Under the pieces are notes generated by a model. That model worked only from the letters and a program-made list of their open reading frames with translations. It had not been told where the DNA came from and did no database searches. Of a stretch of DNA of 62,329 nucleotides, positions 12,354 through 32,628 are shown one piece after another. The translations under genes were made by a program, and so were the position numbers. The stretch's first letter is position 1; every line of letters begins with the position of its first letter. This DNA comes from Ruditapes philippinarum (Eukaryota), in NCBI RefSeq assembly GCF_026571515.1, contig NW_026857622.1:62001-124329 (forward strand). Direction: 5' to 3'.

Positions 12354-12399
12354 ATGTTTGGAATTTTTACCTTACTGTATGTAGTTCTGAATGCTGTGT
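12354..12399 (+). CDS. 4x three-finger (Ly6/uPAR-like) + C-type lectin protein, exon 1: signal peptide
   Basis: MFGIFTLLYVVLNAV|gtaagt, phase 1; joins exon 2 to give ...NAVYITEA-MRCFEC, a classic signal peptide before a Ly6-type xxCxxC start. Confidence 0.85.
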
Positions 12400-12965
12400 G
12401 TAAGTACTTATTTTAATATGCAAATACCTAGTGTTTAGTTACATCAAAATTCGCATATAAGTGCTTTGTTTAGTTTATACATGTATTTTTAGAAAATTTG
12501 AAAGATATTTAGCGGTGTTCAACAATTTAACAGGTCAATTTATACAGCAATTATCTTCCCATTACGTAATTTATACGTGGACTAAATGAAGGGACAATGT
12601 TTCAAATTAAAATCTTCACGCAGTGATCTCCCCTTTATTATTCGGTATGGCAGGGGAAGAAACCGTTGGTAGGAGTATTCAACCGTTATCTCGGATGTTC
12701 TAAAATTAGCTATTAAAACGAACGAAATGTCAAATTTGACCGAAATAAAAGTCACTTATTGTTGATAATTAAGCACTTTTAAAAATAAATTTAAATCACA
12801 TACTTTTTTTAATTCGATCTTATAACATAATTTTAGCATATGTTTCTGATGGCAGAGATCTCTGTACTGATAACGGGAGATCACTGCGTCGGTGGTAGTG
12901 TCCCGAGGTCGTGATGAAAACTTTTTACATTTAGTGGTATTTGACCTTTCTATTTTTGTTTTCAG

Positions 12966-13054
12966 ATATCACGGAGGCTATGCGTTGTTTTGAATGTACG
13001 GACATTCCACATTTAGAAGATTGTGATGTTGTAAGATTGTGTAATACTCACGAA
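12966..13054 (+). CDS. Three-finger/CTL gene exon 2 (domain 1a)
   Basis: ttcag|(Y)ITEAMRCFECTDIPHLEDCDVVRLCNTHE|gtaagg, phase 1-0. Confidence 0.9.
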
Positions 13055-13074
13055 GTAAGGTTTTATCTTTAAAT

Positions 13075-13555
13075 AGCTCGTATAAAATCGGCCATTTTCC
13101 GTCACATTCCGTCATTTTCCGTACATATAGTCGCCAGGTTGTCCGTCCGTCCATCCGTCCATCAGTCTGTCCGTACGTACGTCCTGAATTCGTGTCCGGC
13201 CCATAACTTTGTTATTTTAAGTCTGATTTTACAATCATTTCACGGAAATGATCACATATTGTCTTGACGTGTCGGGCGCAACATTTGGGTTGCTACCTTG
13301 AAGGTCAAGGTCACAGCATGACCTTGAAGCAAAATCGTGTCCAGTCCATAACTTCGTTATTTGAACTCGGATTTTGCAACTATTTCATAGAGATGATCAC
13401 CATATTAAGACGACGTGTCGCGCACAACATTTGGGTCACTACCATGAAGGTCAAGGTCACAGCATGACCTTGCAGCAAAATCATGTTCAGTCCATAACTT
13501 CGTTATTTGAAGTCGGATTTTACAACTATTTCACAGAAAAGATCACCATATTCGC
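13075..13555 (+). mobile_element. Helentron/HINE (pearl-like) non-autonomous element fragment
   Basis: (GTCC)n microsatellite followed by tandem units containing GAAGGTCAAGGTCACAGC and CCATAACTT. Confidence 0.6.
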
Positions 13556-13974
13556 CACATAATGATTCGCCACAGAGTAATAATGATTTGCCACAGTTAA
13601 GAAACGATTCGCCACGTCTTAATATACAATTTTTTTCACAGCTATTTTCCACCCTTACACTGCCTGCCCTAAGCCAATAAAAACAGAGAATTTAGTACCA
13701 CATGATACCAAAATGGACGACAAAAGATATCAAAAAATGGCGCCTAAAGGGCACAATATCCGCCATGTTTTTGTCGCTTTACCTATGTATAGAATTGAAC
13801 TTTCTTCATGTGCGAAGCTCGAAACCAGTGTGTAGGCCCATACAGTCTTAGCAATATATGGAATAATTCTCATAAATAAGAAACATAAGCTCTATTGTTT
13901 TCGAATATTCGGCTGAACGGCGATTCCTAGCATTTTTTGGAAAGGCTGAAACGTGTTTTCTTTTTCTTTTTCAG

Positions 13975-14046
13975 ATATGTTATGTGGAGCAAATTGTGAC
14001 AGCGAGTGGTCACGTGACATACAATTCAGGTTGCAAGGCTAGAGAA
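13975..14046 (+). CDS. Three-finger/CTL gene exon 3 (domain 1b)
   Basis: ttcag|ICYVEQIVTASGHVTYNSGCKARE|gtactt, phase 0-0. Confidence 0.9.
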
Positions 14047-14094
14047 GTACTTTTGTAACTTATACATATACCCCGCTTTAAAATGGACACTTAA

Positions 14095-14450
14095 AGGCCT
14101 ATTTTGCCTCAGAAATGCTTTTATTTTTATTTATCAAAAGCTTTCTTTAGTTTTGAAATACCTTTAAAGTACCCAATAAGTTACTCATTGGCAAATTACC
14201 TGAACCATCTTTTTCAATAGTTACAATTAAAGTGAAAAAAAAGTTTGTATGGAAGTCAAAATAGTACTTTGTTTAAAATTTGCTACTTTTATGAACCTTT
14301 TATGAACAAATTATTTCAAATTTATCGCTACTTTCTTAAGGTAACATGCAGTTTCATTCTGTAAAACAATTATTTAAACAATATCAAATTCATATGTATC
14401 CTTTCTAAAGAAGTAAAAAACATTATTTGTTTCTGTAGCATAATGTGCCT
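14095..14450. mobile_element. Kolobok-like MITE, same family, reverse orientation
   Basis: TTAA|AGGCCTATTTTGCCTCAG ... GCATAATGTGCCT|TTAA. Confidence 0.8.
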
Positions 14451-14653
14451 TTAAGCAGTAATGTTTTCATTTTAGACTACATAACGTTCCTTTTCTTGAC
14501 CTAAGTATTCTGAACTGTTTAGGTTAAAGTCAAATGGTCTACTATGGAAGGACTGTTATACAATAGATAATTACACTGATAGCATGAAATATCAAACATA
14601 ACAACAAACCATAGGAATGTTTGTGTATGGATGTTGTTGGCAGATCCGATATT

Positions 14654-30264: not shown

Positions 30265-30954
30265 GTAAAAATATTTACAAATTTTGTAACGGTTATTTAT
30301 GCATGGCAAAAACCTGATACCATACAATTACTTGTCTAAAATTATAACTAAAGTTCGGCAAAATTATTACAAAATCATATCTTGTGACCGTTGGTTTTTA
30401 ATCATTAACTGCTGCCACGAATAGCGACAGAGTATGTGTGTGTATTTGCGTTTATTTATACTCGCCACCGATTTGCACATATGGGCGAGTCCCATAGAGT
30501 GTTAGTCATTTTAGATTTTGGAGAATAGTGCAAGATACAGATACAGAAAGATGTCCCAATTCTAGAAGCTTCTCTGGCTTTTTAGCTTGCCAAGTGTTTT
30601 AGCACTCATACAGGGAACCTCGAATAAATGTCTCATCCAAAAGACTGATTAGTAATTTTAGTTGGCAAGCCTGGGAATCGAACCCATAATATCGAGATTA
30701 CAAATCTCGCGTTCTACGGATCGAGCCTTGCAGACTAGCTTATATGCTAATGAACAAGTGGGCGTTGATTTACATACCATGATCACGTGTGCATCTAAAT
30801 ACATTCTTTACTGGCACCTTGGTAGAATCATGACCGTATCACTTCCGGTAAGAATCGGTTGGTGAGCATTCAAGGGCAAGATATTTGACGTAGGTGACTT
30901 AAACTACCGTGCTATGCAGGCCCAACCATAAATTCCTATTACTTTATTCTTCAG

Positions 30955-31258
30955 CTTTGTAACAGAATGCCCCACTCCTCTGATGAATTGATAGGGAAAA
31001 GAGCAGGAACACCGGAGGTGGCAAAACGGTCTAGCACATGCAACAAATGCTGTCATCAACATCTGTGTAATGGTCACTGTGATAAATCAACACAACATGT
31101 GTCACAACACCACACAACACCAACCCCCATACCAACAACCCATAAAACAACAACACACACCAGACCGACGACTACGAATACATTTTCAGCGACGCCACTT
31201 CATGTTAAAACACATGCACCTACTTTCGCGCATGCGCAGCCAACTGTACATTATAAGC
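30955..31258 (+). CDS. Three-finger/CTL gene exon 13 (domain 4c + Thr/His/Pro-rich linker)
   Basis: ttcag|LCNRMPHSSDELIGKRAGTPEVAKRSSTCNKCCHQHLCNGHCDKSTQHVSQHHTTPTPIPTTHKTTTH...PTVHYK|gtaagt, phase 0-1. Confidence 0.92.
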
Positions 31259-31499
31259 GTAAGTTAACAAATATCAAATAAATATTGCAATTTCTTTCAT
31301 TTTATACTTTGGTATTTACATACCACGCGATGAAAATAAATCCAGTAGCCACTGTCACTTTTGAAATATTTATTTTCATACCACTTGATAAAATTATATC
31401 CCGTATTTATAGAAAAACAATGAATTTTCTGTTAATTATATACCTTTTCTCTCTTTTCTTACGTTATAATATGAAATAATTCCGTTCTAATTTCGAGTT

Positions 31500-31650
31500 G
31501 GCTGAATTTTAAAGGAAGAAGTCCGACAAGACACCAGTGAAAATACGGAAAATATGTTTCACTGTAGTGAAAAAAAATATATTTTTTACAGCGAAAATAT
31601 GGAAAAGGAAAACATGCATTTTATTTCATCAATATTTCTCAAATTTCATT
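31500..31650 (+). repeat. Dispersed repeat, also at ~43420-43570 and ~46648-46780
   Basis: GCTGAATTT..AGTCCG.CAAGACA.CAGTGAAA.TACGGAAAATATGTTTCACT.AGTGAAA shared by three loci. Confidence 0.8.
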
Positions 31651-31675
31651 TATTTGTACATTAATAATACTATCC

Positions 31676-31835
31676 CAGGAACCATGGGTTCGAGCCCTTC
31701 TTGGGTCACGGCCATGTTTCTTCATATATAATTATGACACCAGTACTGGTTGGTTCCAGGAAGCGGACTCAAAAATGATTAATATAAGTTCCAAGAACTT
31801 GTTTCGCAATCGAGCTTAAATAAATATGTTTAAAC
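31676..31835 (+). mobile_element. 5'-truncated copy of the same SINE, just upstream of the exon 14 acceptor
   Basis: GGGTTCGAGCCC...CCAGTACTGGTTGGTTCCAGGAAGCGGACTC...GCAATCGAGC matches 8071-8263. Confidence 0.85.
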
Positions 31836-31869
31836 CATTACTATTCAATCAGGATTTTACTCGTTTCAG

Positions 31870-32058
31870 ATGAAAACTGTATAAAGCACAATTTCACCAG
31901 TATCCCGTACATCAACCTGTGTTTTAAACTAGAGACGGTCTCTTTAAGCTGGACGGTTGCTGAACGCTGGTGTGGATTCTACGGGGCTACATTAGCAGTG
32001 CTGGACGAGCCCGGCAAGTTCAGTGTCGTTGAGACGGTCCTTAGATATGAACCCCATT
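31870..32058 (+). CDS. Three-finger/CTL gene exon 14 (C-type lectin domain, N-half)
   Basis: ttcag|(H)ENCIKHNFTSIPYINLCFKLETVSLSWTVAERWCGFYGATLAVLDEPGKFSVVETVLRYEPH|gtaagt; CF..SW..A..WC...GA.LA CTLD signature. Confidence 0.92.
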
Positions 32059-32407
32059 GTAAGTGCATTATTTTTGACCGAAATTAAAAATTTAGATGGA
32101 CGAGGGTCAGGGAATTTCATAGCACGTTTATTTTTTGCGCATGTCATCAGGAAAGGGAACATTAAAAGCTTGAGAAATAGTGATTAAAACATTTTTGAGG
32201 CATAATGAGCCTTTGAAGATTCTTTGTAGCAATAAAAGGAGGTATACGTTTGGGTGAACGGAGTGGACGATCGATTCTTTTTCTCATTACAGGTAAAATA
32301 TTTCATAACAAATAGAAGGAGCTTTCTTTTATCGAGCTTGGAATGTTTTTACTAAATTTGCACTCGATTTCACGTTAAAACATTTTTGTTAATATTTTTA
32401 TTTCCAG

Positions 32408-32628
32408 TTCGAAACGAAGTCGTTTATACCGGTGGGCATGATCAATACGGAAATGGTACCTTTTACTGGCCGCACCAACGACTTCTTTCTTTAGGAAGTT
32501 GGTCGGGTTTGAACTTCCAACGTTCAACGGGAAAGTGCATTGCTCTGGATGGGACAAACGGATTCCGAATGGCTTTTGTTGACTGTGATAAATATAGAAA
32601 GTTTATTTGTTCAATAGATACGTCATAA
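32408..32628 (+). CDS. Three-finger/CTL gene exon 15 (C-type lectin domain, C-half, stop)
   Basis: ccag|(F)RNEVVYTGGHDQYGNGTFYWPHQRLLSLGSWSGLNFQRSTGKCIALDGTNGFRMAFVDCDKYRKFICSIDTS*; G..D...G.F.W, C, DC...FIC pattern. Confidence 0.92.

Follow-up and report, generated by a model that had tools for sequence, protein, structure and literature searches.

The stretch of Ruditapes philippinarum DNA analysed here (contig NW_026857622.1, positions 62,001 to 124,329; 62,329 nucleotides, hereafter the window) carries on its plus strand, between positions 12354 and 32628, a locus that combines four tandem cysteine-rich modules, very probably three-finger Ly6/uPAR-like (LU) domains, with a domain of the C-type lectin-like family (CTLD). 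In its 3' part the locus is transcribed, with the fourth LU module (LU4) spliced to the CTLD, and within a modular gene family of the clam it represents the member with a lectin head. The window is AT-rich eukaryotic DNA (~35% GC) with eight assembly gaps.

The original prediction, made from the sequence alone, comprised 15 exons with GT-AG introns. All 15 are recovered at the predicted positions and in the predicted phases from reading frames, Cys patterns and AG/GT borders (Table 1). The outer borders of every LU module are in phase 1, junctions inside a module are in phase 0, and each intact module possesses 12 Cys distributed over three exons: CxxC...C...C in exon A, xC...C in exon B and xC...CxxCCxxxxCNxxC in exon C. 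The four-fold repeat of this three-exon, 12-Cys structure is far beyond chance. A linker of 60 amino acids (T 30%, H 17%, P 12%) connects LU4 with the CTLD. The encoded protein has no visible transmembrane or glycosylphosphatidylinositol (GPI) tail, as predicted, CTLD exon 2 ending without a hydrophobic stretch. No WSC exon is found in the window.

RNA contigs and reads were aligned to positions 26650-32640. Spliced contigs from three independent studies, with depths of 6-29, follow the path 28322-28417, 30190-30263, 30954-31258 and 31870-32058, and the removed introns match the predicted GT-AG sites exactly. Contig X1 record 4 covers 30190-30263, 30954-31258 and 31870-31996; X3 record 18 connects 31119-31258 to 31870-32058; X2 record 7 holds 28322-28417 and 30954-31082, separated by 74 unaligned nucleotides, which are exactly the length of exon B and represent a divergent haplotype. 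LU4 exon C is also covered by X2 records 7-9, and further contigs stop at 32058 or begin at 32408. Since the genome holds a single copy of each CTLD exon, the contigs represent mRNA and not a retrocopy. The predicted fusion of LU module, Thr/His/Pro linker and CTLD is thereby borne out in RNA, and the CTLD exons do not form a separate gene. Upstream of LU4 exon A, X2 record 7 carries 59 extra nucleotides that could not be placed, and therefore another exon is spliced on. Unspliced contigs are present as well (X3 record 19, X2 records 12-13).

Among the junctions and loose ends of the alignment, an interspersed repeat of high abundance at 27.05-27.45 kb predominates. This repeat, present several times within introns (27050-27450; also 15163-15577, 16268-16490 and 17005-17313; translations e.g. 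'RPAWIQTSLRIR' and 'MDPDQTARMRRLVWIHAGRK'), reaches a word depth of up to ~170,000 in RNA runs, shows many joints between opposite strands, and is like a hairpin-forming short interspersed nuclear element or miniature inverted-repeat transposable element.

Part of the gene is already annotated. In a search against 1.84 billion protein representatives, CTLD exon 2 matches the RefSeq protein XP_060596334.1 ('uncharacterized protein LOC132750383', 286 aa; P0001 below) at 100%. P0001 covers exactly the last five exons with the same borders, and begins at a Met just before 'CYSC' in LU4 exon A. Besides P0001 and a protein of Mactra antiquata (P0009), the other matches of CTLD exon 2 look like repeat proteins with a short DGTNGF-like motif (P0020 inspected) and were discarded.

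Table 1. Exons and other features of the LU-CTLD locus, in positions of the window.
Feature	Position	Strand	Remarks
Exon 1 (E1), signal peptide MFGIFTLLYVVLNAV + 1 nt	12354-12399	+	46 nt with a phase-1 end, donor GTAAGT
LU1 exon A	12966-13054	+	4 Cys, CxxC...C...C, phase 1 to 0
LU1 exon B	13975-14046	+	xC...C, phase 0 to 0
LU1 exon C	15562-15724	+	xC...CxxCCxxxxCNxxC, donor CAG|GTTAAG 10 nt past the motif, phase 1
LU2 exon A	17339-17436	+	phase 1 to 0
Assembly gap in the intron LU2 exon A-B	17621-17776		cuts no visible exon
LU2 exon B	17982-18050	+	phase 0 to 0, donor GTGAGT
Assembly gap over the 5' end of LU2 exon C	18316-18639		hides acceptor and first Cys
LU2 exon C, visible part (...IGKR...KR...CILCCDSDFCNNMC)	18640-18880	+	candidate phase-1 exon ends 18862, 18871, 18880
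(TAG)n-type microsatellite, LU2-LU3	19121-20300		holds gap 19480-19753; intron or intergenic
LU3 exon A, intact	25119-25210	+	acceptor within a 23-nt tandem repeat
LU3 exon B, intact	25716-25790	+	
LU3 exon C (exon 10), remnant	26668-26832	+	three reading frames, in-frame stops
LU4 exon A	28326-28417	+	Met of the RefSeq model at 28346
LU4 exon B	30190-30264	+	spliced contig X1 record 4, P0001
LU4 exon C (GKR...KR...CNKCCHQHLCNGHC) + linker	30955-31258	+	ends in phase 1; spliced contigs
CTLD exon 1, long-form Cys pair + WxxAxxxC region	31870-32058	+	junction from 31258 in contigs
CTLD exon 2 + stop codon 32626-32628	32408-32628	+	without hydrophobic tail

Domain identity of the modules and of the head

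Domain searches used single exons, with P0001 standing in for the joined last five exons. The CTLD is clear in these searches: P0001 reaches 32 bits with Pfam Lectin_C (PF00059) against a cut-off of 22.6, and its Mercenaria mercenaria orthologue (P0025) 41.5 bits. Its six Cys comprise the four core residues and the N-terminal pair of the long form. Profile matches in the PDB are led by lithostathine, type II antifreeze protein, rhodocytin and CD69, and the listed Foldseek matches are all CTLDs, with a weak model in this region (predicted local distance difference test, pLDDT, 55-70). The predicted lectin head accordingly stands as to fold family, but not as to Ca2+ and sugar motifs. EPN/QPD and WND of Ca2+ site 2 are absent. 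The positions that we take to correspond in CTLD alignments read LNF and FVD in Ruditapes; Mercenaria has LNF and FID there, and the Mactra CTLD lacks the Ca2+/sugar motifs likewise. Judged by these residues, the head would fall outside the Ca2+-dependent carbohydrate-binding lectins in the strict sense, and classical Ca2+-dependent sugar binding is not expected; 'lectin' here would name a fold rather than a demonstrated activity.

The N-terminal modules are more divergent. The CxxC...CCxxxxCN framework is present in LU1, the visible part of LU2 and LU4, as well as in six modules of P0009, P0025 and a protein of Ostrea edulis (P0024), and LU3 lacks its C-terminal part. None of the curated cut-offs of UPAR_LY6, Toxin_TOLIP and UPAR_LY6_2 is passed by P0001 or its relatives: for Toxin_TOLIP, whose cut-off is 21.2, P0009 reaches 20.7 bits and P0001 reaches 11. 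The stop-free segment of LU2 exon A alone scores 19.3 bits with the same family (E=0.002), and other single exons give weak Pfam matches only. The domain searches proposed with the prediction consequently succeed for the head, but leave the LU families below cut-off.

Support for the LU fold in fact consists of such sub-threshold sequence matches and of ESM-Atlas comparisons, and the AlphaFold2 model of P0001, built on a 3-sequence alignment, has a mean pLDDT of 44.6 (43-53 in the LU part); this weighs against the assignment. The Cys-rich repeats might then belong to some other small disulphide-rich fold that shares a CCxxxxCN-like ending by chance, an explanation to which the missed Pfam cut-offs, the low pLDDT and Atlas feature scores of 0.81, which are leads only, lend some room. 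We consider it very unlikely. LYPD6B (E=0.005, profile search) and PSCA (E=0.38), both LU proteins aligned over the whole domain, are the sole PDB matches outside CTLD and WSC. For residues 1-93 of P0001, the listed top Pfam-labelled feature matches in the ESM-Atlas are all three-finger families (UPAR_LY6, Toxin_TOLIP, Activin_recp, CD59 and TGF-beta receptor II), and the structure neighbours are mollusc uPAR/Ly6 clusters, PSCA and LYPD6 with TM-scores of 0.6-0.7. Further points on the same side are the E-value of LU2 exon A and the strand pattern of the poor AlphaFold model, all-beta as expected for LU. The N-terminal modules thus very probably have the three-finger LU fold.

A dibasic GKR...KR pair encloses a variable spacer before CxxCC in LU1 (15640-15660), LU2 (18670-18790) and LU4 (30990-31035) and the proteins of Mercenaria, Mactra and Ostrea conserve it, as do the paralogues described below. 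The pattern suggests cleavage by a convertase in LU loop III.

Relatives in the clam genome and in other molluscs

Genome queries with LU exon C retrieve at least 14 loci. A signal-peptide exon followed by LU, LU and fibrinogen exons occurs in contigs C14413 (two loci; 27.5-45 kb and 57.5-70 kb) and C7224; fibrinogen exons also succeed an LU exon in C14956, C9678 and C10064 (two loci), which brings the fibrinogen-headed loci to at least 7. On the minus strand of C6187 (L018:4559-6217, L018/L019), two LU modules and a Ser/Thr-rich linker are followed by a MIB_HERC2 domain, for which a single exon reaches 33.8 bits (cut-off 33.5). MIB_HERC2 domains normally reside in intracellular E3 ligases; here the domain is placed behind secretory LU modules. 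Further LU modules, along with an LU exon of 49% similarity, are present on contig C13748.

These paralogues share their architecture with the locus. Their signal-peptide exons resemble exon 1 and comprise 16-17 codons plus 1 nt. The first of their LUs ('type 1') has its donor 10 nt past the Cys motif, an offset identical to that of LU1, and in the second ('type 2', IIGKR...KR) exon C is internal, with a phase-1 end. The locus follows the same plan of an LU cassette plus a head, with a phase-1 signal-peptide exon, three-exon LU modules in the same phases, a Ser/Thr-rich linker and a C-terminal head, and is the lectin-headed member of this family. In a genome-wide Lectin_C search, none of the other LU contigs matched among the 150 scored of >1100 candidates. 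The CTLD repertoire itself is very large, 150 of 150 scored first-look candidates being above the cut-off, and includes tandem clusters, e.g. in C13984, C487 and C9878.

The proposed search of mollusc proteomes returns LU + CTLD relatives. The Mercenaria orthologue P0025 (314 aa; one LU and a CTLD) is 54% identical at 100% coverage and has the same start as P0001, without a signal peptide. Mactra P0009 (659 aa) possesses a signal peptide, an LU3-like LU, a Thr/Pro linker, an LU4-like LU, a linker, a WSC domain, a further LU, a linker and a CTLD; its first LU is 50% identical to LU3 exon A and 48% to LU3 exon B. Ostrea P0024 ('angiopoietin-related protein 1-like') consists of a signal peptide, two LUs, a Thr/Pro linker and a fibrinogen domain, and its two LUs are similar to LU1 and LU2, with 42% identity between LU1 exon B and the matching part. 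Homologue searches with P0009 (whole protein and CTLD region) and P0001 yield only the Mercenaria protein plus WSC and fibrinogen-related (FReD) proteins, and the LU + CTLD family appears narrow in the protein database searched.

Extent and integrity of the transcription unit

Four tandem LU modules in a single open reading frame had been predicted. The modules are present, but the start of LU2 exon C lies in a gap, and LU3 exon C is broken by stops and two frame changes. Reading from 18640 onward, LU2 exon C has an open frame ('...TIGKRSPEVV...KRDIHKVHLCILCCDSDFCNNMC'), without an acceptor or the first 'xC', and by comparison with LU4 ('LCNRMPHSSDELIGKR...') the missing start is expected a few codons inside the gap; therefore LU2 is not callable as intact. 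All gaps were left unfilled and no frame was carried over any of them. LU3 exon C starts in one frame (VCQNLRNHAKKSRTC), has its CNN motif in the next and a phase-1 donor only in the third, and lacks the CC doublet and the last Cys. Because the lost Cys are substitutions, this is decay, more than an assembly indel, and a 15-exon transcript therefore cannot encode a four-LU protein. Omission of the entire LU3 module keeps the frame, since all modules run from phase 1 to phase 1.

The region between LU2 and LU3 contains repetitive features. A 23-nt tandem repeat of ~7 copies (24969-25124) duplicates the 3' splice-site sequence of LU3 exon A (TTCTATTTATAG). In the microsatellite, read over 19038-20422, the minus strand offers a long poly-Thr open reading frame and the plus strand poly-Ser/Val, and the stretch is probably non-coding; the poly-Thr and poly-Ser frames at 19.0-20.4 kb were considered as a linker exon and rejected as microsatellite.

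One transcription unit starting at exon 1 (12354) is somewhat favoured, because a single signal-peptide exon is visible, the LU1 donor matches that of the paralogues, phase-1 donors exist after LU2 and all exons lie on the same strand. A scan of 10.5-28.3 kb for signal-peptide-like exons with a phase-1 donor finds exon 1 only, and the same scan recovers all three paralogue signal exons (3/3). Unspliced read-through of LU1 exon C meets a TAA straight away.

Several observations weigh against a single intact unit. Confirmation by RNA is limited, within the aligned interval, to the last five exons, with none for exons 1-10, and raw reads of RNA-seq run X23 (4% sampled) leave the exons almost empty, from which expression is probably tissue- or condition-specific. 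The Ruditapes and Mercenaria models both start at the Met before CYSC, without a signal peptide, and RefSeq leaves the 5' and 3' parts unjoined. The gaps 18316-18639 or 19480-19753 could hide a second signal-peptide exon, and Mactra P0009 passes from its signal peptide straight to an LU3-like module. LU2 exon C can be read as a last exon with the stop TAA at 18884-18886 and an AATAAA beginning at 18884. LU3 exon C brings premature stops into any transcript that contains all exons.

Part of these points would fit two genes: a secreted two-LU protein of exon 1, LU1 and LU2 ending at the TAA/AATAAA, and an LU4-linker-CTLD gene, including the LU3 remnant, whose own first exon is hidden in a gap or was missed by the scan. 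The stop overlapping AATAAA is followed by T/GT-rich sequence, and ~6 kb of microsatellite and tandem repeats with two gaps separate LU2 from LU3; the Mactra architecture and the unjoined RefSeq parts point in the same direction. We nevertheless regard two genes as fairly improbable, given the absence of a visible signal-peptide exon besides exon 1 up to 28.3 kb at the sensitivity of the scan in the paralogues, the internal position of the type-2 exon C, with a head after it, in every paralogue examined, the phase-1 donors after LU2, and the frequency of AATAAA at ~35% GC.

Alternatively, the locus might be transcribed while decaying, with no mRNA that carries the signal peptide in frame with LU4-CTLD and no functional secreted protein. 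The degraded LU3 exon C, the annotated reading frames of two venerid clams beginning at an internal Met, and the unspliced contigs would suit such a state. It is unlikely in view of the complete sets of Cys retained in LU4 and the CTLD (12 + 6), the stop-free alignment to the Mercenaria orthologue over its full length, many residues being invariant in Mactra as well, the spliced contigs of three studies, and a frame that survives skipping of LU3.

A different gene next to the locus, on the opposite strand, contains an exon for a Sushi/CCP repeat at 41043-41222 (minus strand), which Pfam scores at 32.2 bits, above the cut-off of 20.7.

Putative function and comparison with known systems

Under the favoured single unit starting at exon 1, the locus would encode a secreted modular protein with at least one 12-Cys LU-like domain, a Thr/His/Pro stalk and a C-terminal long-form CTLD. 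We infer secretion via exon 1 and the inclusion of LU1-LU2 in the product. LU3 would be a decaying module, which productive mRNAs must skip. The stalk, probably O-glycosylated, would space the two ends of a soluble adaptor apart: the non-canonical CTLD may bind a non-sugar or otherwise non-canonical target (protein, particle or mineral surface), and the LU domain or domains may engage a second partner, e.g. a cell-surface receptor, with the GKR...KR sites of loop III possibly cut by a convertase. Among the nearest solved relatives of the CTLD are crystal-surface and protein binders. From what the sequence offers, the role may be immune, mucosal or in the formation of the shell.

With regard to the family, a signal peptide and an LU cassette of three-exon modules with phase-1 borders carry exchangeable C-terminal heads; at this locus, LU1 and LU2 would correspond to the canonical cassette, LU3 and LU4 to extra type-2-like modules and the CTLD to the head. 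More speculatively, the venerid/mactrid LU cassette and its mucin-like stalk might constitute a chassis for fibrinogen-like, CTLD, MIB_HERC2-like and WSC heads (and C1q in the literature), as a counterpart of collectins, ficolins and C1q. At this locus, splicing of the symmetric phase-1 modules could then alter how many LUs, and which ones, are included, and GKR...KR would make loop III a cleavable insert. This extended scheme is doubtful as a whole and is offered tentatively.

The soluble recognition proteins on which bivalves depend form large families that evolve fast. A lectin-headed member that is likely counted as a plain lectin in Pfam surveys implies that divergent LU domains are under-counted. 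The sister loci form a natural head-swap series for the contribution of the LU cassette, be it receptor binding, oligomerisation or processing. In the Manila clam, a species of major importance to aquaculture, such molecules are candidate factors of disease resistance or shell formation.

It was not until 2026 that LU fusions with C1q or fibrinogen heads were catalogued. A survey of that year on three-finger proteins of invertebrates names C1q, fibrinogen-like, Ig, MAM, 7TM and further partners of mollusc LU domains, without CTLD, WSC or MIB_HERC2 (Acta Naturae, PMC13719153). A 2023 survey of bivalve CTLD proteins names WSC, sushi, Ig and other partners, with LU unlisted (PMC10140915), and the terms 'uPAR', 'three-finger' and 'WSC' have no occurrence in a 2025 review of bivalve C-type lectins. 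The LU + CTLD combination, predicted to be lineage-specific and absent from both surveys, is undescribed in the literature searched, yet it varies a theme that has been described, and RefSeq already annotates the 3' half as an unnamed gene.

Like the window protein, the mollusc proteins of the 2026 survey are secreted and combine N-terminal LUs with a C-terminal recognition-type domain (PMC13719153). Ostrea P0024 and the fibrinogen-headed loci of the clam genome exhibit the order LU-LU-linker-FReD with the same three-exon LU modules. Compared with the partners in that list, Mactra adds WSC and C6187 a MIB_HERC2-like domain. The bivalve CTLD proteins (CTLDcps) of the 2023 survey likewise join a CTLD to other extracellular domains in bivalve-specific combinations (PMC10140915). 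A Pfam-based survey would probably count the window protein as CTLD-only, since Pfam misses the divergent LUs.

Comparison with uPAR, C4.4A and CD177 gives tandem LUs in one chain and a small exon set of its own for each domain in both cases. Proteins of that type are GPI-anchored, possess two exons per domain and have neither a lectin head nor a mucin stalk. The locus differs from them in three exons and 12 Cys per domain and in a CTLD end without a hydrophobic tail. By sequence and fold, the head is matched best by Reg/lithostathine, type II antifreeze protein, snake-venom C-type lectin-like proteins (snaclecs) and CD69-type proteins, many of which also lack EPN/QPD and WND. These comprise single-domain proteins, dimers and type II membrane receptors, and LU domains occur in none of them. 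Collectins, ficolins and C1q resemble the family by analogy only, one type of N-terminal module being combined with CTLD, fibrinogen-like or C1q heads; the stalk, collagen in those proteins, is an LU cassette with a mucin-like linker in the clam.

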